NCBI GenBank assembly: GCA_047495785.1
Contig: JBLDXI010000010.1
Coordinates: 1,302,001-1,366,000, forward strand
DNA: 64,000 nucleotides
From: Lepidodermella squamata
Lineage: Eukaryota > Animalia > Gastrotricha
Direction: 5' to 3'
The position numbers were made by a program, and so were the translations under genes. This document shows positions 44,768-64,000 of this stretch, piece after piece. The notes below the pieces were generated by a model. That model made no database searches, was not told where the DNA came from, and saw only the letters and a list, made by a program, of their open reading frames with translations. Position 1 is the stretch's first letter, and each line of letters begins with the position of its first letter.

Positions 44768-47700
44768 TCATGCAAAGTTGTTGTCAAGTCTATTGTCTGG
44801 CGATGGGATTTCTTGCATGAACTCTTCCATTGTTAGACCAGCAGTGTCATCAAACATTGAACGATTGCGGTTTTTTCGGCGCTGCAATCTACCAAGAATT
44901 AAATAATAACAATTTGTAACACAAACGAAGAATAGTTAACTTACCCTAAATACACAATTACGGCAATTGCTATCAAAAGCAGCCCGCCGAGAACGCCAGC
45001 AATTATAATGTAAGTCATGTCTTGAGGATCCTCCTGCGTTATTTTTTCAGTCGACAGTACAGCAGTGGTTTTCTCAGTCACAGGGTCTATCGATGGTTGG
45101 GTCGACATTCCAGAGGTTGATTGAGGAGGCTCGGTCGCTATGGGCGTTGTGATTACCTCCTGTTCAGTTGTGGTCGTTGATGAAGCTGTTGTGGTAGTTA
45201 TCTCTTCGGTTGTAACGGACGCACTAGTTGTGGCAGTAGTCGTAGTAGTAGTAATGGGAGTTGTCGTAGGTTCAGTAGCCGTAGTGGTAATTTTTGTGGT
45301 GGTAGTTGGTTCTGTAGTAGGCTGTGTGCTAGCGGGTGTCGTAGTAGTAGTACTAGTAGTAGTAGGCGCCGAGAGGCCTATTTTGTACTTGTATAGTATC
45401 CCAGAGTCACTATCGACTAGGAATATCCACCCATCACCTACAATCATTTGGCTCCACATCGAGTCTTTCGGAATCACGTTATCAGCCACAATGACGCTAT
45501 GATCAGCCTTGTTTATAGCTACCATACCACCCGACACCAATCCTAGGATGTAGTCACGTGTGACTATCATGGTCTTACCCTCGCCGTACTCCTTCAATGA
45601 GACGCTGTAATTGCTCTTCAACCATCCCAAATCTCGACTGTAGACGTCGATTGATTTTTCCAACGGAACGTACACACCTTCTGGAGCCAAACAAGGCATA
45701 GTTACTTCTTGTGTAGAATCCCTCGGGATATTGTTCGTAAACCAAGTGAAATATTTGCCTTCCGAAAAGAACGAGTAAGTTTCAAAATTCACCTTTAGCA
45801 CAACTGACGCTTTCTTATCGGATACAGGCAACCATGTTGTTGATAAATAATCGCTTCCAGAGTATTTCTTCAGCAAGGCCAGAGTTTTTGGATCCAGAAC
45901 AAACAATCCATCCGGCGCCGAGACGTACAAGCCAACCCCTTCCACCAGTGATAGCCCCAAGATTTCGTCGTGAGGGGATTGAGGGAAATTGAGATCCTGG
46001 CTAACGGCAACTCGCTCACCCGTTTCAACCTTGTAGGCATAAACTTTTTGTACCGCTGTGAAGTAGACAAGTCCCAAATCATCGCTAACAACGCCTCCAT
46101 ATTTTCCGTAGAACACAGCTTTCGGGCCAACTCCAGCGTCAACACTCCAAGCTATCGACAAATCCTGAGTTCGAATCGCGTGGAACATTATCCCGCGATT
46201 AACTGTTGAGCTTCTCGTGAAAATTAATGAATATTCTTTAGATAAGAAGGGCTGTGAAAATTTTCGAAGAGTGTCATCAGAAAGTTGAACAGGTTCTGCG
46301 AAAGTATCCGTTACACTTGAATACCGCCAAATGTAAGAATTGTCTATATCCATTAGGTACAAGTAGTCGTCGAAGAACAGTGGATCATGAACTGCGAACC
46401 TATCCCATTTGGGAATTGGAGTTTTAGCGACCTGGATGAAAGCATTCGCAGCGCTGAATCCTATTCCATAGTTGACGTAACGGGAATGGCCATGATCTCC
46501 ACCGACATTGACCCAATTCAAGTCAGCTGCATGAGGCTCATAGTTATCGAGCTCAAGTTTCACGAGTTGTGCCTGCTCGCCATCGACTAGATACAGGCTT
46601 TCATCGTCAGCAAACAAGTAGTCATTATCCAGGGTGCTTGGCGTGAGATCGTCCACCACTAAAGCTTCGCCGTTATTAGTTTCGTCGTAAACAGCTAACA
46701 AGCCGCCGGAAATAAGTGAAAATACCATATTTTGCGTAGCGATAGGACCATTCTTAGGGTAATAGTCAATTACGGGGTTGTATTTCTGCGTAAAAAGCGT
46801 ATTCTTCAATCTGCCGTCTTCTCGGTTCAACACCTTGATGACACTCCCTTCACTGATGTAGATGCTATCAGGAGACATAGCGACAGCACTATCCCGATCA
46901 CGAAGCTGATGGTAATTGACCGTAGCCCAGTTGAACGGTAGTTTGCGATCGCAGTATTTGTATTCTACCTGATCCTTCTCATGCCAATTCATTGTCACAA
47001 AACTGGAGCCACGTGACACAGGTAGCCACTCATTCCCAAGGTATGAAACTGAATCGACGCTATCTTGTTTCTCCCCAGTTTTCGCATCGATCGTAAAAGT
47101 GTAGCCATTTGAAGCGGCTATGATAGTGTTAGCATTCAGTATAGCCAGACCTAACACATCCCTATATGATATTTCGATCAAAGAGTGGGTATTGAAAACG
47201 TAGGCTCCGGTTTGAATGGAGAGAGCGTGAACTGCTAGTCCAACTGGGAAGTAAACCATGTCGTTTACATCGCTAACAACTCCTGGCATCGACACGTAAA
47301 ACTTATAGTCCTGATCGCTCGTCTCAGCTTTGATTTCCCATAACTTGACCATCGACATTGAATCAAAGGCGTACAAGACAACTCCGTCTTCCTTGTCGTA
47401 ACTGCTTGTGAAGATCAAGCCGTGCTTCAGAGATGCGAATGGCTGGGCATAGACTCGATTTTGAAATTGGCTCGGCGTTAGCGTCGCTTCAGTGGACAGG
47501 GTTTTTTTGTCTAATCGCCAGATTGTGCCGTCAGTTTTCGACATGACGAATATTTTCTCTCCAATGATCAATGGCTCGTGGGCTTCGAAAGAACGGCCTT
47601 GATTAAACACATGCCGAGCTACTACTGTAAACGAATTCTTTCGATCTGATGTAGGGTTGTCGATGTCTACATATCTCGAATGGCCATGATCTCCTCCTGA

Positions 47701-50700
47701 ATTCACCCAAGAGTACCCAGTTACCGGTTGCGGAGTAGTTGGGGCCGTTGTTTCCAACACGGCGGGAGTTGTAGTCGAGCTGGATGCAACTACTTTATAT
47801 TTTCTGAAGGTCCCGCCAATATCAAAGGTGTAGATGAATTCACGGTTTAGAAGAATGTGTGAACTCATGACGTCGCTGTTGAAAATGCCAGGAATATCAA
47901 TAGTTTTCTTTGTTCGCTTGTGGATTACTCGAAAGCCCTCGTCGATTAGCGCGAAAACGCAGTCGTTTGTTATCAAAGGTCCACGCTTTGCAAGTGTCAC
48001 GTCGTAGAAATAATTATCTAATTGAGCAAGATTTTGTCTGTCTAGCCTCGATAAAGAACCTCGCTCTGATATGTAAACGCCGTCAGGAGCAAGCGCTGCA
48101 TCCAAGGCTTCTGGCTGCAGAAAAGAAGTTGAAACCAAACCTGAACGAGATTTATCGCCATTTTTGTCAACAGTAATCCACTGGGTAACGTCGGGGATCG
48201 GGTTGACTTGAAATACTATAGCAAGATCGTCTACAGCTACTTGAAACGCAGAACTAGCCACGGCGTCTTCCAAATCATTCGATTTGAATTCTCCACTGAT
48301 AGCGTCAATTGCGATATATCCTGTTGGAACTGCAGCCAAAATCGAGGACCCATCTGCTGAAAGGGTAATGCTGTACACGGGACCTGTCGTTACGATATCA
48401 TCCGTAGTGAACTTGACCTGACCACTTGGTATATGAACGCATCTCACTCTTCGCCCTATTCGAAAATACACCAAGCCCAGGACTTCATTCACAGCGCCGC
48501 CGAATCTATCGTTCATATCAGTTTCTTCGAAAGGTTCAATATCGTAAACGGGCAGTTGCCATAAAGGCTCAAGATGCAAGAGGTCGATGGCATGAAGGGT
48601 TGTTGTCTTTTCAACGGAATGATAACTCCTTGAAAACATAAGTCCATAGGCCACAGATATGAACGGCTGAGAGTAATAGTTCAATATGCTGCTCTGATCG
48701 ATTGAAAAATCATCTTCAACGAAGTCTTTCTCGGAAATCTTGTAAACGGTGAAGCCGCGTTTTGCCATGATGTAGAAAACACCATTTACGAGGAGGGGTT
48801 CCCACATCTCATTTCCGGACCAGGCAGGACCGGTATAGACAGACTCAAGTTCCACAGATTCCAAATCATCACCGTAATGTAGGTCTCTGAATCGAGTATG
48901 GCCATGATCACCTCCAGAATTAACCCAGGGCAAGTCATTAGGTTGAAGCACCGGCGTCGTCATAGGAGTAATTTGAGTGCTTGTTGAATCTTCTCGGAAC
49001 AAAGTGTATCTCATCATCCTACCTCGAACATCGAATGCGTAGATGTATTCGCGATTCAATAAAATATGGCAGCCAGAAATTGAGTTCAGGAAAGCGTCTA
49101 TTACTTCGAAAACTTTCTTTGTTTTCTTGTTGATACCAGTGAACCCATTAGGAGTAAGGAAGAAGATGTATTCATTTGTTACAATCAGTTCACCTTTCGG
49201 CTTGATATGCTCTAACCGATAGAAATTATCGTTCATCATCGTGTACCTGTCGTAAACATAAACCACCCCATCATCCGCTACGTAAACTCCATCCGGAGTA
49301 ACAGCTGGTTCATGCTGGAAGGATAATCCTACTTTAGCGAGATCAAAGCTATCGCCAACGATGTACTCATTGTCTTGCGTTAGCGAGGAATAGGCAATTT
49401 CTTCTGGAACAGGATAAATTGTTGCGATGATCGAATAGGAATCACCGGCGAGTTGATATTCATCAGGTGAATCGGCCCAACCTCGCATGTACGAGTTCCC
49501 AAGCCTGCCTGTCAGCGCATCGATTTTCACAAAGCCACCTGAAATCGCAGCGAATAAAGTTGACCCGTCATTCGAGAGAGTTATGCTGAAAAATTGCCCA
49601 TATCTGGCGACTTCTTCGGTTGTGAAATTGATACTACCGCTAGCAATATTCAAGCAGCGAACACGATTCCCGATTTTGAAGTAAACAAGATCGAGTTCTT
49701 CGTTTACAGCTCCCCCGAACCGGTCAGTCAAATCAAAGAACAGATTAGGAGACAAGTCGCTGGCAGGGATTTTCCACAAATGCTCGAGGTTTTCCAGATG
49801 AATAGCATGGAGATACATAGCTTGAGCTTCAACGTGAAAACTTTTTGCAAAGAGCAAATCATGCTTCATTGAAATGAATGGCTGCGAATAGCTGTCTCGC
49901 ATTTCTGATTCAACGATTTTCGCATCACGATACTGCAAATCGGTTTCGGAATATTTCCACAACGCGAACGATTTTTTCGCCATTATGTAGATATTGGAGT
50001 TGAAGATGAGAGGTTCCCATATCTCAATGTATTCCCAGATATTACCAACGTTAACAAAATCTGCGAGTTGGAAAGCGTTGAAATCCCGGCCATAGTTGAA
50101 GTTTCGGTACCGAGTATGACCGGAATCGCCACCATTTGTCGTCCAGGGTAGATTATTCGGTATATTTGCTGGGGTTGTTGTGGGTGAAGTATCTTCGACA
50201 AATTCATATTTCGAGACTGTACCACGTTCATCGACTGCAAATAGGTAATTCTGATTAACAACGATGTGGCACCCAGAAACATCTATCGGAAACATATATC
50301 GATCCCCGAACACCTCTTTTGTTTTCAAATTCTGACAAGCAAAACCGCTTTTGACAAGGAAGCAGATGTAATTGTTGGTAACTATCGGTCCACTTTGAGG
50401 TTCAGAGCCATTCAGTCCATAAATAGCTGATTCTTTCATGGTTTTTCTGTCGTAGACATAAATTCGACCGTCCCTCGTGACGTAAACCTCGTTTGGAGTC
50501 ACGGCTGGCTGATTTGTCCTGGATAAACCACGATCCTTATATTCATCTGCAATCAATGCGTCGGAGCCTGCGTAAGAAGCCCAGGAAATTTTGTTTGGCG
50601 ATGGCGCGAAAGCGAAGGTGGTCGAGTAATCGTCTTCAACTAGCTCGAAGTCTTGGCCAATATCTGCCCAGTCAATAGTGAATGAATAGTCAAAGTCACC

Positions 50701-52587
50701 AGTATCTGCTTCTATCTTCCCAAAACCATTTGTTATAGCTGCTAGAACATAAGATCCGGAATTAGACATAGTTACGCCATAGACGGACGAATCCAAGTCC
50801 GGGATTGAAGATGAAACAAACTTTAAATCTCCAGTCAAAACGTTCAGGCATCGAACGACATTTCCGACGGAAAAGTATACGTAGCCAAGTTCATCATTAA
50901 CAGCGTCGCCATATTGCTCATAGAACGGTTTATATTGCGGAAGAGAAGGCCCTTCAACAAGCCACACGATTTGTAATTTATTCGCATCGATAGCGTAGAA
51001 GTGATATTTGTCGGTTATTAGATCGTAGCTTTTCGTGAAAATCATTTTGTATTTCTCAGACAAAAATGGCTGAGCAAAAAATGTCTGGTATACCACTGAT
51101 CCAGGCATGATCAGCATCTGCTCCAGATTTTCCTCGTCAAGCGCCACCAGCTTCAAATCTTGCTTCGACATGACATATATTTTCCCGTCGAAGATCAGTG
51201 GCTCAAAGGCTCCGCCAAAGTCTTCAAAATTGAGATCTGTTGTCGCAACTAAGTTGACTGCATTGAATCTATCGCTAGGATGCGTTATGTTTCGAAACCT
51301 CGTATGTCCATGATTGCCACCAGAGTTCGTCCACGGGATGTTGTTGGATTTCGGACCTCTGGTGCCCAAACCGTACTTGGAAACCGTACCCCGAATACTG
51401 TCAACGAGAAGGACGTAATCTTGGTTTATTGCGAAGAATGATTCTGTAACGTTGTGATCCATCGCATCGTCTATGTAAAACACATGCTCAGAATTTCTAT
51501 TGAGCGCCGCCACTCCGCCTGGTATCAACACGAAAATGAAGTCCTGCGTCAGTATCGGAGCACTCTGAGTCTTAAGGTTGGGGAAGAAATGGAAATCCGG
51601 GCTGTCGTCTGGCTCTTCTTGATGAATTTTGAAGACAGAGTTTTCGCCTGAGAGGGCGTAAATTCCATTTGGAGTCACCGATGGTGCTAATGAGTGAACC
51701 GGCCTGTATTCAGCATTGAAGCTGACGATTTGCGACATCCAGTCTTCATCTAGCCCAGTTCCAGCGTAAAACACACTATTTTCACCAGCCCATAGAGTGA
51801 CAGTCACTTCCAAGCTATCAATTGCAGGGGCCCAGTCCTCTCCTTGAACCGCGAAGGCATTGTGAAGTTTAGTTCCATTATCAACCACTTCTCCAGTCAT
51901 TGCGTTCAGTTCGAAACAACCTCTTGGAATCGCAGCAACAAGAATCCCCTGCCTTAAAGCCAGACCCATGATTGGCGAGTTGAGAAACGGCTCCACGGCT
52001 AAATCCCCCGTAGTGAATTTAGTCTCTCCAGTATTAGCGACCAGAGCTCTGATTTTTGTGCCGACTTGGAAGTAAACCAGACTGAAGACGTCGCTCTCTG
52101 CCCCACTGAATCTGCCCTTGAATTCACCAGATAGATCATCAGCTATTACGGTCCAGGAAAACCCATCAGGTCCAAGAGCTAAAGCGTGGAACTCTATTCC
52201 AGTTGTTGGGTGATAGCTTTTCGTGAAAATGGTGTTCATACGAGCGGAAATGAAGGCCTGGCCGCACTGTCGACCGGTTTCAGCTGTGAAAGTTAACCTT
52301 TCGTCGAAGGATAGATCTTGCTCGTTTAACACCCAAACATATCCGGATTCCTTTGCTGTGATATAAATTTTGCCGTTGTATATCAAAGGCTCCCATAACT
52401 GCTCACTGTTCCAGTGGTCGAGTTGTATTTTTTCTTTGAGAATGAAAGAGTCGATGGTGCCATCGAATGAGTAGTCGCGATAGCGGGAATGGCTTGAATC
52501 TCCGCCTGTGTTCAACCAAGGCTCATCCCATGCCCTTGAAAATTGAGCAATCGAAGCAATAACAGCTAGTAAGATAGCAATCCTCAT
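44768..52587 (-). CDS. Beta-propeller-repeat type I membrane protein, family member 2 (6 repeats)
   Basis: Paralogue of member 1. Likely start MRIAILLAVIAS at 52587 (an upstream in-frame ATG exists at 52647). Intron 44889-44944; last exon GLQRRKNRNRSMFDDTAGLTMEEFMQE...FA*. Confidence 0.85.
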
Positions 52588-52981
52588 AGCACTTAGCAAA
52601 AAAATAAGTGAAAATAGTCCAGTTAACCTACATTTGCCTGCAACCATTCTCTGATAAGATAACGAATCCTCACGATGGCTATGAATAGCAGAAAATATTA
52701 TTCAAAGCGCAAATAAATGGCGCTTCGTATCAAAATGAACCAAGCTTTGAATGTCGGCCAAAATGTAAACGACCGTTTCGAGGATACGCCCTAAAGTTTG
52801 TTTTCTCGGTTGTCGTGTGTGTCGCGAGTGTCTCATCGCGGGCGACAAACGTTGCTAAGCCCCTCAAGGATAAAATATTTCGCAAATAATCTTGTTTCAC
52901 CATAGAACCAACAAATCAAAGTCTACATTGTGATTTATTTCATATTAAAAGTTCCAATAAATCAATTAGGAGCTTTTGGCA

Positions 52982-55803
52982 TTAGGCTGTGGGATCTCGT
53001 CCCATTTCTTCCATTATTAGGCCATTATTATCGTTAGAACTTGAAAGTTTGCACCAACCCCTTGGTTTAGCGAATCTGGGAAACATAAAAAAAATCATGT
53101 ATGTCAAGCCATATAGTTTTAGAATTCAAGACTTACCCGAGATAAACATTCGCAGCCAAAGATAATAAGAGAAAAACGCCAAGAATACTCCCAGTTATAA
53201 CAAGAGCTGTTTCAAGGTCGTCTTTGTTAGTTTCCTGCGTCGTAAGCCCTTCACTCAGAGTTGTAGTTCGTTCTGACGAAACTTCATCCTGCGCTGTTGT
53301 TGATAGTAATAAATCAGTTGTTGATCCATCAGTAGTCGAAGTGGGCGAATCGGTGGAGACAGCGGGTGTTGATGTTGTTTCATTCGACCTCAAATAGTAC
53401 TTGAGCAATGTTCCAGATTTGCTGTCAACCAAGTAAAACGCATGCCCATAACTAGGATCATCGACCAAAATCAAGTGGCTGTGGGTCAAATCCTGGGATA
53501 TAGCGGTGTTAAGATATATCATGTCTGAGCCCAACTTGCTGATGGCCAAAATACCGCCCGGAATCATACTTACAAGGTAATCTTTGGTTACAATCAATAT
53601 ATTAGAAATTTTATCATTATCCAGATTCACACTGGCTTTAGTGATACGTCTACCCCAATCACGGCCAAAAGCGCTAATCGATGTCTTAGTCGGGATGTAA
53701 ACAGCATCAGGAGCTATGCAAGGCAGGATCAAGTCTTGCTCTTGATCTTTGACTTGACTAGTACTCCACGAGTAATACGGCCCCAACGAATGAAATTGAG
53801 CATATCCGTTGTAAATCGATATCCATATCGCCGACTTCTGATCAGCGACCGGCGCCCAGTTGAATAACTGATCACCTGTTTGCTTGGCAGAGTCCAAAAT
53901 CGATAAGGTTCTAAGATCCAACATGAAAATTCCTGTGGGTACAGAAACGTATAGCCCAACATTTTCAACCAAGGACAAGCCGAGAATGGAGTCGGTTGGT
54001 GAGTTTAGGGTGTACAATGCCTCACTCTCAGCTACAAACTTTCCAGAGTCGATTTTGTAAGCTTGAACTGTTTGTTTTGTTTGAAAATAGACTAGACCTA
54101 GGTTGTCGCTCACTACACCACCGAAGTTAACGTAGAAAACACTGACTGTTGCATTTTCAGCCGGAACTCGCCAACTATCAGACAGATCGGCTGCTTTCAC
54201 TACATGGTACATGAGCCCAGTAGAGGCGTGGTAGCTTCTTGTGAACAACAGGCCACTTTTGGCAGAAACAAATGGCTGAGAATAAAGGCGATTCTTCTCA
54301 ACGAAGATTTGTTTCCGCTGAACTAGGTCCAGTGTCTCCGCAGAGTACTGCCAAATGTAGCCATCCGTGTAATGCATGAGATAAATGAACCCATTCCAAA
54401 CTATTGGCTCAAATAGGTAGATTTTGTCGAAGAATTCAATATTCGCGCCAGCAATTTGTATGAATTCGTTTTTATTACTTCCTAACGCTACGTCTCGATA
54501 GCAGGAGTGACCATGATCCCCTCCGAAATTCAACCACTCGGATGTTCCAGAGTTCGGCTCATATGAACCCAACTTCAGTTGGATCAACTGGGCCTCATTG
54601 CTGTCAACAACATACAAATGATTGTCATCCATGATCAAATAGGCATCAGTGACGTTCTCTGCCATCAAATTTTCACTTAGCAGATAGCTTGCGCCTGCTT
54701 CTTGGTAAAACCCGGCAACCCCACCTGGTACCAATGAAAAAATACTGTTCTTTGTCGAAATGGGCCCATTTTTCGGGGTAATTGGATGCGAGTCATAGAC
54801 GACTTTCACAGCTCCATCACTTCTGCCTAAACCATAGATTGATTTCCCCCAATTGGTGTAAAGTAAATCTTGAGATAGGGATGGAGTCACATCTCGAAGG
54901 TCTTGCGTTGGATATTCTTGTGATAACCAGCTGGGACCATTTAATTCGATATAATTGTATCTCAACTGGTTGAATCGTGTCCAGTAGGAGGAAACGTGAG
55001 CCTTACTATCAGAAACCGGTTGCCACTCAAGGCCAGGTAGGAACTCATTGTTGAAAGTGCAATCTTGAACAAAAACACCCGTTCTAGCATCTATCAGACA
55101 AAAGCCTTGTTTTATCGAGACAACTAGCTGAGTTTCTCCCATCAAAGCGATTCCTAAGGCTTGGCTACCAAAATCTCTTGTTGTGAATACGTAATTTCCA
55201 GTAGTCGAGTTCAAAGCATGGATCTGAGCCCCTGCTGGAAAGTAAACCAAGCCATTTGCATCACTTACAACGCCTGGAAGTCGCTCGTAAAATATTCCCA
55301 TCGATTCCGTCAGTTTCGCTTTAGTTAACCAGGCATAGTGAAGACTTTCAGTATCTATCGCATAGAAAATCAGGCCATCTTTCTCGTTGTAACTTCTTGT
55401 GAATATCAAGCCGTTAGCTTCGGACGCAAATGGTTGAGCGTAGAGATAATTACTTGCTGGGTTAGGAATTGAAACGTCGAGTAAGCTAAGACCTTCTTTA
55501 CGTTTAGCACGCCACATTTCAGACGTTTCTCTGGCGAAAATGAAAATGTGCCCGTTTAAAATCAACGGCTCGTGGAGAAGAATTGGCTTGCCAGCACTGA
55601 ACTCTTCTCGGGCAGTCATAATGAATGTGTTCTTCTCCAAAGGCATAGACAAGTCGAGGTATCTTGTATGCCCGTGGTTTCCGCCAGAATTCAGCCAATT
55701 GAACGCTTTGGGATCTTTATTGGCAAGCTTATATTGCAGGATTCTTCCTCGGCTGTCGAAAGCTAAGATGTTGTCACGGTTTAGCAAAATGTAGCACCCG
55801 GAC
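52982..55803 (-). pseudogene. Family member 3, 3' fragment (piece 3 of 3): two repeats, stalk, TM, last exon
   Basis: Open frame from the footprint edge (SGCYILLNRD...). Intron 53076-53136; last exon ends DPTA* at 52982. It begins with TSD A (acccggac, 55796-55803). Confidence 0.85.
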
Positions 55804-55834
55804 CATAGACAATGATGTACCATCATTGTCTATG
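55804..55834. mobile_element. P-element-type excision footprint J1 (31 bp)
   Basis: catagacaatgatgtaccatcattgtctatg = 16 nt of the element's right TIR plus 17 nt of its left TIR, overlapping by 'ta'. Confidence 0.9.
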
Positions 55835-57412
55835 GTTGACGCTTTCTACATCGAACGAATATCATACAGATGATAGTCGCGTCTACGCTCAACCTGTCAT
55901 TTCAAGCCGATATGGAATTATTTTCACGAGAAGCTTCCACACTAATGGTGAAGATATAATCATCCACGCTCTTAGTACTGTTGACTTACAGCTGATATGG
56001 AATGTTTCGGAACCAGTCAGTATGAATTCGGCCTTCAATAGCGATATCGGTGGGGTGGTTTGCGATGCTTGTGGGTTGGTTTACTTTCAGTCGACCACTT
56101 TTATCAAAGCCTATAAAATTTTAACGGGAGAGCTGTACTTGAATGTTAGCTACTTCCATGAACCTATAGTTGGGCTCTCCCTAGTTGACGATAGTAAACT
56201 TCACGTCTCCACACTCAAAATGTACCAAGTATTAGACGCTACGACCTTAGAGCTCCTCGATTACTCGACGTTCAACGATAATGATTTCGAGAACTGGGTG
56301 CCGATAGCTGACCAAAAATCAGTGATAAGGACTCGAGTGAAATCGCAGTCTCTAACTTTCACATCCAAGGGGAAGTATCTTGATTGGACAACGGCTGAGA
56401 TAGACGCATTCAGCGTACCTTATGTCCCACCTTCTTTGGCCCCAGATGGAGTATACATCGCAAAAAGATCATCAATTGATGTGTACAGTCGTGATTTTGG
56501 GAAAGTCAAAAACATACCACTTGATGGGCTGGCACTCCAACACAGTGTTATAGTGACAAGGAACTATGTCCTTAGTATGATAGGCGGGGGCATGGTTGCT
56601 GTGAATAGGGCGGATTCAACTCGGATTGAAATAGTGACCAACAGTAGGCCGCAAGGTAATGAAGACAGTCATATGGTGTTAGTTCGGGACGTAACTTACG
56701 GGCATGCCATATACTATGTCGACAGGGAATCCGGGAAACTAAGCAAGTATTACCTGGGCGTCAAAACCCCCGATGAAACAACAACTCAAGAAGTAACGAC
56801 TCCTCAGGTTATTGAAACCACAACTACTGTCGAAACAACAACAATGGAGTTGACTACTTCAAAGCCTGTAACAACTCCAAAGCAAGGGGAAACTACGACG
56901 ACAACTCCAGCATACGTGTCAACAGCCGAACCTACTACTACAACCTCGACAGCGCCTGTTACGACCCCAGAAGCCGAAGTAACTACCACTTCAACCGGTG
57001 CTGAAACTACAACAACTTCAAAATATGAACCAACAACCGAACCTTCCACTCCTGCTGGGATCGAGACGACAACAGAGGAGAAGACTACCAGTGCTCCTAC
57101 CACAGAAGGTCCAACTGAGAAGCCAACAACTGAGAGGAATGACTCAGAAGAGCCAGACATCACTCTAGCGGCTATTGCTGGAGTTCTTGGGGGTGTTTTG
57201 CTGTTCTCAGTGCTTGGAAACGTGTTAATGGGGTAAGATCAAATTGAATTTCAGCAAATACATCCTCTGTAACACATCTTTTTGCCAGGCTAAAACTGTA
57301 CCGCAAACCTCGAGAACGCTCAATGTTCGATGACAATGTCGGTCTAACAATGGAAGACTTCTTACAAGAAACGGGGCCGCCTGTTACTGGTAACATTGAT
57401 GATACACCTTGA
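55835..57412 (+). pseudogene. Family member 4, inverted 3' fragment (rest of last repeat, stalk, TM, last exon)
   Basis: Open frame LTLSTSNEYHTDD...TM. Intron 57233-57288; last exon GLKLYRKPRERSMFDDNVGLTMEDFLQE...TP*. It begins with TSD C (gttgacgc, 55835-55842). Confidence 0.85.
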
Positions 57413-57571
57413 AACTAAATTCCGTTGAGATCCAAATAAAACAAGTTGAATATCATTTTTGTATCTTATATCTTTTATTGAGATTCTAACAGCAGAAAGA
57501 GAATCCATAAGCAACAAGGATTAAAGTAAAAATATTTCGCATCGAGAGCCGGAAAACGCCGGAAATGTCTA

Positions 57572-58256
57572 TCATCCTCCTTTGAGTGAAGCTCGCTTCT
57601 CGTCACTAACAGCCGGCGTCCCATCAACGGACTGCATGTTATTCACGATAAGAATCTCCTTCTCGCCAACAATTTGCACGAAGAACGTGCCCTGGTGCCG
57701 TTGCTTCATCTCACGCCTTACATCAAGCGCAATTTTCATCGCCACCCCGATGGTTAATAGACTGACAAAAATTTCGAGCGAGCAGTCGCCGAGTGCTATC
57801 AGTACAAACGTATCTTTCTTCTGAAAATAGTTTGATCGTTACAAAAATTTGGGAAAAATGCGACGAAAAATGACCTCTTTTGCGTAGAAATGACCATCTA
57901 TCGTTTGATTAACTAACCCGAGTCGTAAAAGCTGAATGCTGATTGTACTAACGATTATTCCTGTGATGCTGAGAGATAGCAAAACCAATATGAGGTAGAG
58001 AGTTCGCCTCCTTATTGCGTAAAATCCGGTTAATGCTGTGAAAATTGACTGACAAAACAAGAAAACCTTTAGAGGTTTTGTCTTGACAATTATTAAATCT
58101 TACCATCGCCCCAGTTAAAATGGGCCCAAGACTGTAGGCCATCCATACTTCAGCTCTGATAGCTGATATGATGCCTGTCCCTATGGCTACGACGCCAATT
58201 ACAAGCTGAAGTATCGAAAGAATTATCACAAAAATATTAGAAGCCGAATGAGACAT
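57572..58256 (-). CDS. Four-TM protein, TMEM196-like (MS4A/CD20-like), 3 exons
   Basis: Exons 58256-58104, ~58048-57875 and 57820-57572 splice into one frame: ILQLVIGVVAIGTG...AEVWMAYSLGPILTG...SIQLLRLGLVNQTIDGHFYAKEKKDTFVLIAL. Confidence 0.7.
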
Positions 58257-59393
58257 TTTTTCCCTATGAATAACGGTTATTTGTCGTTTTTAGGCCGTTT
58301 TCAAAATGATGGTATGCTTTAGTGCACAATGATTTTCGTTGGCATGCGGCCATGCGCCTTTGTTATTCGATCGACTAAATATTCTTATGAGAACGATGGC
58401 CAGCGTTTTCATATTGAATTAAATACCCACGGGAGATCAAATTACGAAAAAGACATCTTAGTACAAGAAAAAACATTGCCACGATGCGCAAACAATTTAC
58501 TTATGCGCTATGTTTCTCGTACAGCGAGTCGATATAAGAGAATATAAGAGAATTCTGTATCGATTTCACGAGTGGCTGCTTGTCAATTTAGTCACCCATT
58601 CACGCTGGCGATATGCAAGCATTTTAGCAGCGCAAATATATCCCCATATTCCCGTATTATAATGGTGTCAAAACGCCATCGGCATTCAGTGAATGAACAA
58701 TAGTGGGAATCAATAATCACGAGAAATATCTAGAAAAAGCTTAACTCTACAATTATGGGAGGGCTGTCGAAAAACACATAATGGAAACATTTTTATGGCT
58801 TCGCAGAAAGATTTCGTCCTTGTTGTTCAAGATCTGAGACAACAATTTCTTCTATTTTTCTATTACAGTAAAATGCAGGAAAGTTGCTTTTTAATTGTTC
58901 TCTCCTGTTATTGTCCCAGTTTTCTCCGCTATATTTGTGCGATTGTTGTTACGCACTGCACACAAAATCGCTCAAGTAAGATTATTCCGGCTACCACAAG
59001 TCTGTGGCTAATTATTAGATTCGACTGTTGCCTGAGGGCGCCATGCTTGGTATCAGACAACAAGTCTGAATGCCGGGAACATTGTGCGCTCATCCATCAA
59101 TCCAGATGAAAAAGAAGGAAAACCAGATGTAGCCTCGTGTTAAAACTCCTCGAATTGATGAAATGGCAGGTGAAAAACTTTAACCTAAATTTCTTGGACA
59201 CTGTATAAGCAAATATTGCGACATGACCTGATAAAAATGGCAAAGCCGCTTCAGTATCGTGTATAATGCGATTCTAGTAGAAAGTAAGGGTTTTTATCTT
59301 ATCTATTAATTGATAACTTGACCGAATTACGGTTCCCAAATTGGATCAAGCCATTCCTATGGTTTCCGGATCGGAGTAGACTATTTTTGAGAT

Positions 59394-59648
59394 ATGAATT
59401 CCAGTCTAACCATCTTCATCGGATTATTGTTTCTGCAGCTACCTGGTGGATATTTGTACGAAGGCAGTGCATCAGTCTATAATATTGCTTGGTCGAATAA
59501 TGGAGGAGATTCTGGCCACTCTCGTTTCAGGAATTTCACATACGGGGCAAATTTCGATGCATTTTCCCTACTACGAGAAAGCAATGGTGAACAACCATGG
59601 CAAAGCAACTTCATATGGGAGCCTCTGATTTTCGAAAATGCTATCTAC
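59394..59648 (+). pseudogene. Family member 3, inverted 5' fragment (piece 1 of 3): signal peptide and start of repeat 1
   Basis: MNSSLTIFIGLLFLQLPGG...WSNNGGDSGHSRFR...WEPLIFENAIY, then runs into a TGA in footprint J2. It ends with TSD B (ctatctac, 59641-59648). Confidence 0.85.
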
Positions 59649-59680
59649 CATAGACAATGATGTAACCATCATTGTCTATG
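59649..59680. mobile_element. P-element-type excision footprint J2 (32 bp)
   Basis: catagacaatgatgtaaccatcattgtctatg = 17 nt of the right TIR plus 16 nt of the left TIR, overlapping by 'a'. Confidence 0.9.
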
Positions 59681-60601
59681 ACCCGGACGTATCGTTCAAA
59701 AAAGCGTCGGTGACCTGGAAAGTAAGTCTCGACTGCTTGCCTAGTCCAGTAAATCCTCCAGATGAGAGGAAGAAGATGTAGTCGTTAGCCACGATTGGTC
59801 CACTCTGTGGAAGTATCTCTCCAGAGGCGTAGACGTCAATAATTCTCATAGAGTTTCTGTCATACACAACAATTGATCCGTTTGATGCCACATACAGGCT
59901 GTCATTAGACAAAGCAGGCTCTATTGCGCTGATCGTTATGTTTTGATCAAAATTAATCGATTCGCCGATTTTCTTATCGAAACCTCGCGGATTGAAAGAA
60001 TAGAAGGATAGATGTGCAGAACTAGGCCAAGTTGTGCCGATACTTGAAATCTCATCCAAGGCTATTTGATAAGGCAAACCTCCATCGGCAGTTCCTTGCA
60101 TATAAGTACTTCTTATATCCCCAGTCTTAGCATCAATCTCGACATGACCCCGTGGTATTGCTGCTAATAAAGTGGATTGATCGCTGGAGATCGTTAAGCT
60201 GAAAGCTGATGGGTCTTTCATTTCACGCGTTGTGAAATTCAGTTTTCCAGTCTCAACATCTATAGCTAGAACTCTTGAGCTGTCGAGGAAATAGACTAGG
60301 CCAAGTTCATCGCTAACTGCAGCGCCAAATCGTCGAGTAACATCGAAGTTATCGTCTCGAAAGGAGTTATCTGTTTCAAACTTCCAAGTTTCAGCCAAGC
60401 CAAAAGAATCGACCGCATGAAGAACTGACGTGCCATCTTTCAATTGATAGTTTTCGAAGAAAATCACGCCGAATCTGAGTGACAAAAACGGCTGGGAGCA
60501 ATATGAGTATATTGTGCTAAACGATTTTGTGAGCTGTAAATTCAATGTTTCTTCATCATACTTCCACAGCGTACAGCCTTGTTTTGCCATAATGTAGATA
60601 G
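59681..60601 (-). pseudogene. Family member 3, middle fragment (piece 2 of 3)
   Basis: Open frame IYIMAKQG...DAFLNDTSG, bounded by TSD B' (gtagatag, 60594-60601) and TSD A (acccggac, 59681-59688). Confidence 0.85.
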
Positions 60602-62382
60602 CATAGACAATGATGGTACAGATCGGACACTCACGCACTTCGCATTGAAACACTAATTATGCGTGGATCGGCCATTATAAATCCGGCCGAAAAGTCGTTG
60701 TTCTCCTAAATTCTTGAAAAAAATATCGAAAAATCGGGCATTTTTTTACGGTAATAATGATCCAAGTCCCGTAGTGCGGTTCGATTTCGTTGCCGAGAAA
60801 ATCAATATCGAAAAATCGATTACTCACACTCTGTATTGTTGTGTTGCGTCATCGCGTGCCATGCTCACTCGATAAAAATAAGCATTCGAAAAATGTAAAG
60901 TTGTTGTGTGCATGTGTCATTAAAGTCAGCACTTCAGAGGAAATTTTTAAGGAGGATTTCTTGAAATCTATTTCCTACCCATTTTTATTGAGTTTCATTT
61001 GTATAATGGCGACGATAGCAGCCAAAAGGTGAGTGATGATCCTCCTTAAATTGTGCTCATTTTTATTTTTTTTTTCCAAAATTTTGAAACCGATAAAAAT
61101 ATTTAGTATAGGCTGCAAAATTGTGAAAGAAATTTGAAGTAGGTTTTATTATAAATCTATGAAACAAAATCTCATTTATTGGAAAATAATTCGAAAATTG
61201 ATTTAATTCAATTTTAAATTTAAAAATTGATTTTTCCATAATTTTTTTGAATTTTTCGATATTTTTTATTCAGACCAAGGTTGATTTTGCCTCGATAATT
61301 GAGACTTTATTTTCTTCTAGGTTGCTGAGCTTCATGATTTAACTGAATGGGACGAACTTGAAGCTGAAGACGAGTTACTGCAAAGAGGAATGGAGTACGA
61401 AGCAACGCTCCCCCTAATTGGGGAAGAAATTATTGCCAACATTGGTGGATTTTGCGTCAAAAAACTTCTAACTGACAAGCTGAAATGCCCCGGCTGCATC
61501 GATTCCCTGACACGCGATTTCCTTCTGACTCCATGCCGTGTGATAAAGGGCTTCAGTTTCCGAAAACAAGACGGGAAATTATGGTAATAAACATTTTGCT
61601 TGGAATTCGCTATCTAAAAGTACGATTTCAGTCTCACTCGCCAGTCGTTGACGGTATATCGAATCGTGAAATCCGTCCGGTCGATCATACGTGAAAATCT
61701 GGACAATTACATAAGAACTTCACTACCCATCGTTGCCGTGCAAAGAACGCTTTTTTACGCGGCTTGTGCCAGGCCGGTGCTTCTTGACGGCCTTTGCCAA
61801 GAATTCGACGCCGGTGCTGCGCCACACTCTCATCAACTCTTCAAATCGATTGTCGCTGTTGCGGCTGGAACTTTCCTTCGCCATGAGCTCAAAATGCGGC
61901 AGGTGGCTATGAAGCAACCGACGAAAAGCCGTAAAGCGGCTCAAAACGAAAACATGTGAATGAAAAATGAAAAACGCTTCAATTTCTTTCTATTTTGATA
62001 TCTATCTACAATTTTTCGATCAACTTAAATTAAAGCTGAAAAATAGCAATAAAAATAGAGTATGCCACAGATGTTCGTTTTTCGTAACAATCAAATTTTG
62101 AGTGGCGCTAAAAAAAACTTGAAAATAGACTTAACAACTGACAAAAATCGCTACAATCTTTTTTCCTAATTTAAAAATCATAGGGAAGGAACCGCACCTC
62201 GAAGTTTGCATCACTAGCATCCTTGAAAGATGAGGAATTTTTAGGTCCAAGTTTCAAAAAATTCCGAGGCCTACGACTATTTTCACCTTTTAAATCAATG
62301 CATTTAAATTAGTGTGCAAATTTATGGTTTAGCGTAAACAGGCAAGTGCGTGAGTGTCCGATCTGTTACATCATTGTCTATG
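60602..62382 (+). mobile_element. Non-autonomous P-superfamily DNA transposon (1781 bp, 39-bp TIRs)
   Basis: TIRs 60602-60640 and 62344-62382: catagacaatgatg(gt/ta)acagatcggacactcacgcactt, 37/39 identical, with CA...TG termini. Its 8-bp TSD partners are found at displaced positions, and the internal exons resemble a P/THAP9 transposase C-terminus. Confidence 0.85.
61321..61959 (+). pseudogene. Spliced remnant resembling the C-terminal domain of a P-element/THAP9 transposase
   Basis: Exons ~61321-61583 and 61632-61959 (48-bp GT-AG intron) join in frame: IANIGGFCVKKLLTDKLKCPGCIDSL...GKLCLTRQSLTVYRIVK...HSHQLFKSIV...FLRHELK, compared with the recalled family pattern YIAGFVVRKL..KC..C...L...GGL..PS...H...L+K.I. 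No THAP or catalytic domain is visible. Confidence 0.55.
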
Positions 62383-64000
62383 GCGTCAACAAATCTGTAG
62401 CGTACTTCCATGCGTACCCTTTCGATCTCTCCATCAGATAAATTTGACCGTTGTAGACCAGCGGTTCGAAAAAGCCTGACCCTGGCGTTGCATTAATGAT
62501 ATCAGTCGAATAAGCCAGAATGAATGCATTTGCTACATTTTGAAGGGTGAGGTCACGATATCTCGAATGACCAGGATCACCTCCCCAAGCTGCCCATTCT
62601 TCGGTTTTCGAGTATGGTGTAAAATTGTCCAGAACAACTCGAGTTATATCGCCCTTCTGACTATCGACCGTGTACAGGCTTTCATCGTCCATTACCAAGT
62701 AAGAATCAGTGACGTCCTCAGAAATAGCATCAGTGATCGCAAAAGGCCTGAAGCGATCGCTGCCTGCGTCGTTGTAAATCCCCACGATGCCACCCGAAAT
62801 TATCGAGAAAATACTGTTCCGGTTAACAATTGGCCCGTTATTCGGATGATACTGACGCAAGCCCATATAGCTCTTGATAGATCCTTCGAATCTGTCCAAA
62901 GTAACAAAGGAATCATCTTGGGCTATGACTACTCCATCAGGAGACAATGCCGCTGTTGCAGCTCGATAATCAGAGCCAATATTGACACTTTGCGATCGCC
63001 ATTTGGGACCATTAACTTCGTTGTAGTTGAACGCTACCTCGTCATCTGATGGCCATAATACGAAAACAAAAGCTGCATCGTCGCTAACTGGCTGCCATTC
63101 GTAGCCGTTATACAGTCTATCACCGATAACGCAGTGTTCGTCCATATTACCATTGGTCGCGTTAAGCGTACAGTATCCCTTATTCACTGATATTATCAGG
63201 GTATCGTCATTCATCAAAGCCAAGCCCATAACATTGATGTCAGAGGTAGATGAAACCAATTCTTGGCTTTTGAAGACATACGCGCCATCTGTAATTTTGA
63301 GAGCATGGACTCGCCGATGAGCCAAGAAGTAAACCAATCCATTGCTGTCACTTACAACACCAGGCAATCTTTCAAAATTTTGATCTTCAGTCTCCGGTAG
63401 GTCGATTTGAGTATCCCACTCCGCTACGAGGCCGTTAGCCCTTATGGCATGGAAAATCACACCTGTTTCCAGGTGGTAGCTTTTTGTGAATATGTAGTTG
63501 TAGGCCTTTGAAGCAAAAGGCTGCGAGAAAAGACAGCCTTCAAATGGGCAGTTAAATTGCCATTCCAATTGCTTGTGAAGATATTTCTTTTCGAAAATCC
63601 AGATTGTAGCGTCAACTCGGGACATTACAAAAATTTGATCGCCTAAAATCAGCGGCTCGTGGAGTAGGATAGAAGTGCCGTTTGTCAACTTGTGCTTCGC
63701 TACTCCGGTGAATGAATTCATCCCAGCTGGGCTCGAAAAATTCAAGTATCTTGTATGACCGTTATTACCTCCAGAGTTCAGCCAGTCAAAATTTGTCTGG
63801 AAAGGTCGGGGCGTGGTCGATGTGGATTTTGTTGGAATTATCGGGTCGTATTCCAATGTGTATTTAGACATCTCGCCCCCGCCATCGATTACGTAGATGT
63901 AATCGTGGCTTAGCACCAGGTGAGTTCTCGTAGGATCAGTTGTAAAGCTGCTTTGAAATACCTCCTTGGTATTTCGGTTTACTCCAGCGAAACCATTTTT
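62383..64000 (-). pseudogene. Family member 4, 5' portion (start beyond the window), interrupted at the transposon
   Basis: The frame is open from the window edge to ...GYAWKYATDLLT and stops in the TIR. It ends with TSD C' (gcgtcaac, 62383-62390). Confidence 0.85.

Follow-up and report, generated by a model that had tools for sequence, protein, structure and literature searches.

Within the window, a 64,000-nucleotide stretch of the genome of the gastrotrich Lepidodermella squamata, one P-superfamily transposon and two footprints of the same family each lie between unlike target-site duplications. We propose that this arrangement arose in four events, namely two insertions, one alternative transposition and one excision, and we assign this history a probability of roughly 0.65. 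What a sequence-only reading of the window had taken for two nested inversions is more likely to be one transposase-made rearrangement, which we favour because of an exhaustive event search and because a second locus holds the non-chimeric intermediate that such a history predicts. It is also more likely that a true excision is needed for just one of the two footprints in the window.

The transposon family and its traces in the window

The surviving element is a 1781-bp non-autonomous copy on the plus strand (positions 60602-62382, left then right end), with its left terminal inverted repeat (TIR) at 60602-60640 and its right one at 62344-62382. These 39-bp repeats mismatch solely at positions 15-16, where the left reads GT and the right TA. 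The sequence-only reading had used these two positions to type transposon ends, and the difference is kept by each of the 14 family copies that we aligned and by every end that we typed genome-wide. The 14-nt tip of the repeat occurs 79 times in 121 Mb, versus 0 occurrences of a control pattern.

Footprint 1 (55804-55834; 31 nt) and footprint 2 (59649-59680; 32 nt) both consist, when read on the plus strand, of a right-type tip followed by a left-type tip, with at most 17 nt kept per end in footprint 1. Footprint 1 has duplication A on its left and B on its right, footprint 2 is flanked by C and A, and the 1781-bp element by C and B, in the same order. Duplication A (ACCCGGAC) is present as direct copies at 55796-55803 and 59681-59688; B (GTTGACGC) lies at 55835-55842 and, reverse-complemented, at 62383-62390; and C (CTATCTAC) is found at 59641-59648 and, reverse-complemented, at 60594-60601. 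All three pairs are perfect over 8 bp. Once the ends are reassigned to their duplications, sites A, B and C have one left-type and one right-type end apiece, A in reverse and B and C in forward orientation. The succession right-left, right-left, left-right and the pairing of ends that had been read from the letters are thus confirmed, as are the places of the features. Three exact 8-mer cross-matches with the correct end polarity are excluded as an accident.

The 1781-bp element derives by internal deletion from a 4.28-kb element that codes for transposase. Full-length copies have the Pfam TNP-like RNase H N, GTP-binding insertion and RNase H C domains, with PF21787, PF21788 and PF21789 all at or above the cut-off in a 473-aa exon of the 4.28-kb copies (PF21789 exactly at it, 24 bits). 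Pfam returned nothing significant for the internal ORFs of the 1781-bp copy, and the identity of the family therefore comes solely from the full-length copies. Their transposase core matches that of the Drosophila P transposase (PDB 6P5A), with weak similarity (E=1e-6). A simple ORF scan, which a domain split over 5′ exons could escape, gave no THAP match in the upstream ORFs. Perfect 8-bp direct duplications border more than 25 ordinary copies and footprints. Both this duplication length and an RNase H fold interrupted by a GTP-binding insertion domain are shared with Drosophila P and vertebrate THAP9/Pdre. The TIR of the Drosophila P element is 31 bp. At 39 bp, the TIR described here also differs from the 13 bp of zebrafish Pdre2 (10.1101/2024.03.22.586318).

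The footprints are stereotyped. All 13 in this subfamily measure 31-32 nt, with neither end represented by more than 17 nt, and several from a sister subfamily are of about equal length, also with at most 17 nt per end. To judge from the sequences, this length would fit the 17-nt staggered cut for which P transposase is cited in 10.1101/2024.03.22.586318, a further likeness to Drosophila P, THAP9 and Pdre. We conclude that the family is a young, active cut-and-paste DNA transposon of the P superfamily.

Host genes and a probable unrearranged allele

Four segments of host DNA are separated by the footprints and the element. S0 (53133-55803, minus strand) encodes, according to the ORF list, the C-terminal two thirds of host gene 2, with propeller-like repeats, a Thr-rich stalk and a membrane anchor, and ends at duplication A. 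M1 (55835-59648, plus strand) is an inverted and displaced ancestral segment that starts with reverse-complemented B and ends with reverse-complemented C. From host gene 1 it contains the C-terminal half (55835-57236) and a probable short last exon predicted from about 57290, and from host gene 2 the signal-peptide start (59394-59648). On the opposite strand of M1 lies an unrelated small membrane-protein ORF. M2 (59681-60601, minus strand), the middle piece of host gene 2, starts with the right copy of A and ends with C. Finally, S3 (62383-64000, minus strand), the N-terminal part of host gene 1, starts with B and extends beyond the window.

Re-pairing the six flanks by their duplications gives the order S0, M2, reverse complement of M1, S3, with an A-to-B span of 4.72 kb. 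In this order two reading frames are restored, one of 1277 aa (host gene 2), which crosses sites A and C, and one of at least 1003 aa; by alignment, both are colinear with an intact 2568-aa paralogue over all three junctions. Host genes 1 and 2 are shown to have been adjacent minus-strand membrane-protein genes of one family before the rearrangement. All three target sites are exon sites, and the rearranged allele destroys both genes. Pfam searches of the host proteins gave a sub-threshold PQQ/BamB-like propeller match and none that was significant.

The ancestral order is also seen in a public sequencing run, X1, the sole run used, which is stored as short contigs (unitigs). One of these connects 60604 with 59637 on opposite strands through 11 shared letters, corresponding to an empty site C, and its length of 496 is exactly that predicted for the empty site. 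Another has a 31-nt loose end before 55836 that agrees with reverse-complemented S3 in 29 of 30 letters, corresponding to an empty site B. The empty sites seen in X1 are C and B; S0 is poorly covered, and A was hence not seen. Both contigs have the predicted order and about half depth, and about half depth also applies to a contig (record 7) in which 30 nt of footprint 2 are joined to M2. Because M1 and M2 are single-copy in the assembly, we take the X1 contigs to be alleles and not paralogues. Given the half depth of empty C and B, the sample seems to carry the unrearranged haplotype as well, and the rearranged allele appears to be heterozygous with it. For the derived order, the evidence is the assembly itself and the coherent way in which the duplications fit together.

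The ancestral locus that the sequence-only reading had reconstructed, with three targets within ~4.7 kb in coding exons of one gene family, is therefore borne out by the restored frames and by the empty sites C and B. A search of the assembly for a second haplotig or a close paralogue of M1 and M2 found none.

Event histories and a second locus

We searched exhaustively over insertion, hop, excision, recombination and alternative transposition for the shortest route to the present order. The minimum is four events with alternative transposition and six without it. A three-event history was rejected, as every combination of the searched event types that reaches the present order takes at least four steps. 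Two mirror histories tie for the shortest, and the footprint made in the third step is footprint 1 in one of them and footprint 2 in the other. Parsimony (four versus six events) is an argument, not proof.

In the four-event history, a 1781-bp copy would first enter site A in reverse orientation. A second copy would then enter nearby in forward orientation, either at C, 0.9 kb off, or at B, with the donor copy retained or restored through repair. In the third step, the transposase would bring together one copy's left end and the other copy's right end, both on the same chromatid, and cut them. The two flanks, each with up to 17 nt of end, would be ligated to give a footprint, and the two freed ends would be inserted at the third site, so that one reaction would create both a footprint and the third 8-bp duplication and would also invert and displace the 3.8-kb segment. 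Lastly, the other copy, now between unlike duplications, would be excised normally and leave the second footprint. The history supposes that P transposase can pair the ends of two copies on one chromatid, an ability that we infer by analogy with hybrid element insertion and Ac/Ds.

A second triad is the exact product of the proposed third step without the fourth, i.e., the predicted intermediate. It comprises a footprint (C10:1773114-1773144) and a 1597-bp copy (C10:1928249-1929845) on contig C10, and a 4282-bp copy on contig C31 (C31:129719-134000). The duplication ACTCAGGC borders the C10 copy at its left end and the C31 copy at its right end, and the footprint has unlike duplications and one left and one right tip, as do both footprints in the window. 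When the empty target was rebuilt, a paralogue on C48 aligned across it without a gap. This alignment settles junction Y, where Pfam gave no match for either half of the frame across the junction; junctions X and Z have short reading frames only in the ORF-continuity test. Both copies keep class-diagnostic bases at both ends and are non-chimeric.

The main rival is the history of the sequence-only reading, in which full copies pile up by local hopping, two successive homologous recombinations between inverted copies produce the inversions, and two excisions follow. It formally yields the present order, and the local hopping that it assumes does occur in this genome, where three further loci have an element and, 0.9-1.8 kb away, a footprint with a proper duplication. 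Recombination between P-superfamily copies in inverted orientation did produce natural inversions in Drosophila, in which the duplications are exchanged (PMC2775673), and inverted Ds copies 1.1 kb apart in rice recombined in 11% of plants (PMC3239180), so such a history is not far-fetched. However, the three insertions, two inversions and two excisions are not the shortest path. Even if one excision was the donor of the third insertion, at least six events are needed, and the cost over alternative transposition is two to three events. At the second triad, moreover, recombination predicts reciprocal chimeras of the 1597-bp and 4282-bp copies, but in each copy the bases specific to its own class persist from about position 150 up to about 50 bp short of the other end, and any crossovers there would therefore be confined to the outermost 50-150 bp. 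Judged as at the Drosophila transposon Galileo, the second triad has the exchanged duplications and lacks the reciprocal chimeric copies, which argues against recombination at C10/C31. In the window, where only one element survives and all 1781-bp copies are nearly identical, chimerism gives no guidance between the two histories; the window fits a new duplication common to the ends of two elements only if one later excision is allowed. On balance, we consider the recombination history unlikely.

An assembly artefact, or random breakage and end joining unrelated to transposase, is highly improbable, as, although no X1 contig spans either footprint (short unitigs break at repeated tips), neither would yield three exact 8-bp cross-matches, a left and a right end at each site, and footprints of the family's stereotyped length, and the junction of footprint 2 with M2 recurs in X1.

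Whether the family repeatedly restructures chromosomes through pairing of two copies' ends on one chromatid is a broader question, on which we are evenly divided. That reading would take in the window, an inversion of at least 155 kb with an exchange between both contigs at C10/C31, and a fold-back duplication at C16/C32. For two further elements with unlike flanks (C13:3011966 and C20:2866470) and a footprint (C20:3201558), no partners were found among 99 ends.

Comparison with known systems

The closest parallel to the four-event history is single-chromatid alternative transposition (SLCT) in rice, which involves two inversely oriented Ac/Ds elements and in which 24 of 34 such events came with excision (PMC3239180). 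As in rice, flanks are ligated with a footprint, ends are reinserted nearby, one new 8-bp duplication is common to two elements, a segment is inverted, and one or both copies are often excised as well. The rice events concern the hAT superfamily in regenerated transgenic plants, whereas those described here concern the P superfamily in a natural animal genome. The footprints also differ, with about 15-17 nt kept per end in the window and a few changed flank bases in rice, and the target in the window, unlike that in rice SLCT, lies outside the interval bounded by the two elements.

Hybrid element insertion of Drosophila P (Gray, Tanaka and Sved 1996; Preston, Sved and Engels 1996; both as cited in PMC2775673) likewise involves the P superfamily, a left and a right end from different elements, and a new 8-bp duplication, as far as it is described there. 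In its classical form, according to the same account, the ends come from sister or homologous copies at one site and give flanking deletions, duplications and recombinants. In contrast, the paired ends in the window came from copies at two different sites, because the flank-joined footprint has unlike duplications on its two sides.

Galileo in Drosophila buzzatii (PMC2775673) shares with the present case the P superfamily, natural chromosomes, exchanged target-site duplications and empty sites in unrearranged chromosomes. Its breakpoint copies are chimeric, proving ectopic recombination, whereas those of the second triad are non-chimeric and, together with the flank-joined footprint, point to a rearrangement made by transposase.

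Alternative transposition is already known from experiments with the P element and Ac/Ds, and the window is a clean natural example of it rather than a new principle. If the broader reading of repeated restructuring is true, single-chromatid alternative transposition would here have its first natural record at sequence resolution for the P superfamily. Such a record can be read because left and right ends differ inside the 17 nt kept in footprints. When transposons have rearranged a natural genome, recombination between copies is commonly given as the cause, since wrong-end joining by transposase leaves little diagnostic evidence. In the present case, the set of traces is complete: typable ends, footprints, exact duplications, an unrearranged allele in the same sample and a second locus at the predicted intermediate. 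The family would thus allow a natural test of how frequently animal chromosomes are reshaped by alternative transposition, as opposed to recombination. In Lepidodermella squamata, the process may still run, and could be traced in pedigrees or populations.

Typed ends and paired duplications

Between 55796 and 62390 of the window (G000:C10:1302001-1366000, from a 121 Mb animal assembly), six copies of the 14-nt tip of a single transposon family are present. Two tips lie back to back in each of two footprints, at 55804-55834 (31 nt) and 59649-59680 (32 nt), both of which read right-type then left-type on the + strand, and the remaining two cap a 1781-bp element (60602-62382), which reads left then right on that strand. 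The 39-bp terminal inverted repeats of the element mismatch solely at positions 15-16 (GT in the left end, which is the end upstream of the transposase remnant, and TA in the right). This difference is kept in 14/14 aligned copies, as well as in all ends typed genome-wide, and is a property of the family. Footprints retain up to 17 nt of an end, positions 15-16 included, and so remain typable; our inspection of the tips bore out the orientations assigned in the sequence-only reading (both short units right-left, the element left-right).

The six 8-mers flanking these units sort into three perfect pairs, each of which joins one left and one right end. Site A (ACCCGGAC; 55796-55803 and 59681-59688, direct) received its insertion in reverse. 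Site B (GTTGACGC; 55835-55842 and 62383-62390, reverse complement) and site C (CTATCTAC; 59641-59648 and 60594-60601, reverse complement) received theirs in forward orientation.

The ancestral gene pair and its unrearranged allele

Collapsing the pairs gives the ancestral order: S0 (to 55803), M2 (59689-60601), M1 (55835-59640) in reverse complement, and S3 (from 62391). On the minus strand of this order two long reading frames are restored. One, of 1277 aa, opens with a signal peptide, spans C and A, and closes with a membrane anchor; the second, at least 1003 aa long, spans B and continues beyond the window edge. An intact 2568-aa paralogue at 44941-52647 aligns colinearly with both frames across all three junctions, and therefore all three insertions were in coding exons. 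The two genes struck are neighbours and belong to one lineage-specific family, whose only Pfam match is propeller-like (PQQ/BamB-like) and sub-threshold.

The tandem members of this family, at 44941-52647 (-), 53133-55826 (-), and 62378-63916 (-), are very large, apparently near-intronless single-pass membrane proteins with a Thr-rich stalk and a C-terminal anchor. Their repeats, roughly 400 aa as estimated from paralogue self-alignments, have in common the recurrent motif SGGD/N-x-GH-(S/T)-R(Y/F). A small ORF without a Pfam match, at 57948-58256 (-) in M1 between the two large genes, encodes a multi-pass membrane protein and was taken along with M1 by the inversion.

Empty sites are present in X1, one public sequencing run stored as short contigs. 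One contig, whose length of 496 is exactly that predicted, connects 60604 with 59637, in opposite strands, through 11 letters common to both, and is empty site C, where the duplication stands once. Another leaves 55836 backwards for 31 letters, matching the reverse complement of the S3 start at 29/30, and is empty site B. Since M1 and M2 are each single-copy in the assembly, these contigs represent alleles and not paralogues. Contig depths in X1 (~60-85 for allele-specific contigs vs ~115-135 where both alleles coincide) suggest heterozygosity of the sample, with one rearranged and one unrearranged allele. Empty site A is missing among the X1 contigs because S0 is barely covered, and the footprints are unbridged by any of them because unitigs break at the repeated tips; the derived, present order rests on the assembly and on the internal coherence of the scars. 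The restored frames, the colinear paralogue, and empty sites C and B uphold the ancestral order and the exon targets in one gene family that had been proposed from the sequence alone. X1 contigs also differ at many positions from 56672-57866 and 59212-59604 (with a dense cluster at 57831-57866), and over parts of M1 the variant form alone is found, so the X1 haplotypes there are not identical to the assembled one.

A P-like family that hops locally

The 1781-bp copy is an internal-deletion derivative of a 4282-4283-bp element, of which the genome holds four nearly identical copies. The main exon of the long copies encodes three Pfam domains of P-type transposases (RNase H N-terminal, GTP-binding insertion, and RNase H C-terminal) and gives a match of E=1e-6 to 6P5A, the solved Drosophila P transposase; a simple search of the upstream ORFs found no THAP domain, though one split over 5' exons may have escaped it. 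Ordinary copies are flanked by perfect 8-bp duplications. We counted 13 genomic footprints of the element's subfamily, with further ones of a sister subfamily; in both they are about 31-32 nt long and retain at most 17 nt from either end, as the 17-nt staggered cut of P transposase (cited in 10.1101/2024.03.22.586318) would predict. The majority are one identical 31-mer, which is explained by a 2-nt overlap of the two retained tips. Three loci combine an element with a nearby footprint that has a proper 8-bp duplication, at distances of 0.9, 1.2, and 1.8 kb (C16:655677-658379, C13:3010716-3013746, and C17:287963-291575; L002, L003, L005, and L041). Chance alone would give about 0.01 pairs of this kind, so the family hops locally, in agreement with the earlier proposal.

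Alternative transposition and recombination as possible routes to the present order

The sequence-only reading had derived the present order from three insertions, two nested inversions, and two excisions. With the locus coded in symbols, we ran an exhaustive search that allowed five types of event: insertion, excision, cut-and-paste hop, inverted-copy recombination, and alternative transposition, in which transposase pairs the left end of one copy with the right end of another on one chromatid. The minimum was six events without alternative transposition and four with it, so that the targets and order of the earlier history stand, and its chain of seven is formally workable but not the shortest. 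In the shortest history, one copy would have inserted at A in reverse and a second at C or B in forward orientation. One alternative transposition targeting the remaining site would then have generated, in one reaction, the third duplication, a footprint whose two flanks differ, and M1 in its inverted, displaced position, to be followed by one ordinary excision. Two mirror histories are equally short, and the flank-joining scar is therefore not assignable to either footprint. The surviving element is uninformative for mechanism, because all 1781-bp copies differ by no more than 1-2 bases; favouring alternative transposition over recombination here rests on parsimony and on analogy with a second triad.

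This second closed triad, which turned up among all ends surveyed and whose three 8-mers cross-matched, supports alternative transposition as the mechanism. It comprises a footprint (C10:1773114-1773144), a short element of 1597 bp (C10:1928249-1929845), and a full-length element of 4282 bp (C31:129719-134000; loci L037, L011, and L033), and its pattern is exactly that expected directly after one alternative transposition, without later excision. The footprint joins the old left-end flank of the short copy to the old right-end flank of the long copy, and a new duplication, ACTCAGGC, is common to the short copy's left end and the long copy's right end. Recombination would give reciprocal chimeras, whereas these elements, of structurally different classes, each keep class-diagnostic bases at both ends and are therefore not chimeric. 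A paralogue on contig C48 aligns without gaps over the rebuilt empty target, in which ACTCAGGC occurs once, and shows independently that the C31 left flank and C10 right flank were once contiguous. The event fits an inversion of about 155 kb, with sequence swapped between the present contigs C10 and C31.

The sister subfamily has, at C16:880643-886570 (L080), a unit whose ends are both left-type and whose flanks are inverted. This unit lies between 1283-bp inverted duplicates and adjoins a footprint with a proper duplication; its flank 8-mers are common to an element at C32:644018-645675 (L066, L089). This more complex third example resembles what sister-chromatid or hybrid-end transposition would leave as a fold-back product. 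Unlike flanking 8-mers were also seen at two elements (C13:3011966-3013746 and C20:2866470-2868584) and one footprint (C20:3201558-3201588), for none of which the 99 ends collected contained a partner. The same process may have made them as deletion-type products, or the partners may have disappeared later.

Alternative transposition of rice Ds likewise entails a cut, flank ligation leaving a footprint, and a shared 8-bp duplication, with excision in 24/34 events (PMC3239180). In the same study, inverted copies recombined in 11% of plants, and we therefore retain recombination as a live rival. Hybrid element insertion provides the experimental parallel for the P superfamily, and the natural inversions of Galileo have been ascribed to recombination because its copies are chimeric (PMC2775673), in contrast to the elements of the second triad. 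What the gastrotrich provides is not a new principle but a new natural case of a known mechanism, one that is unusually easy to read and comes from another animal and a new P-like family.
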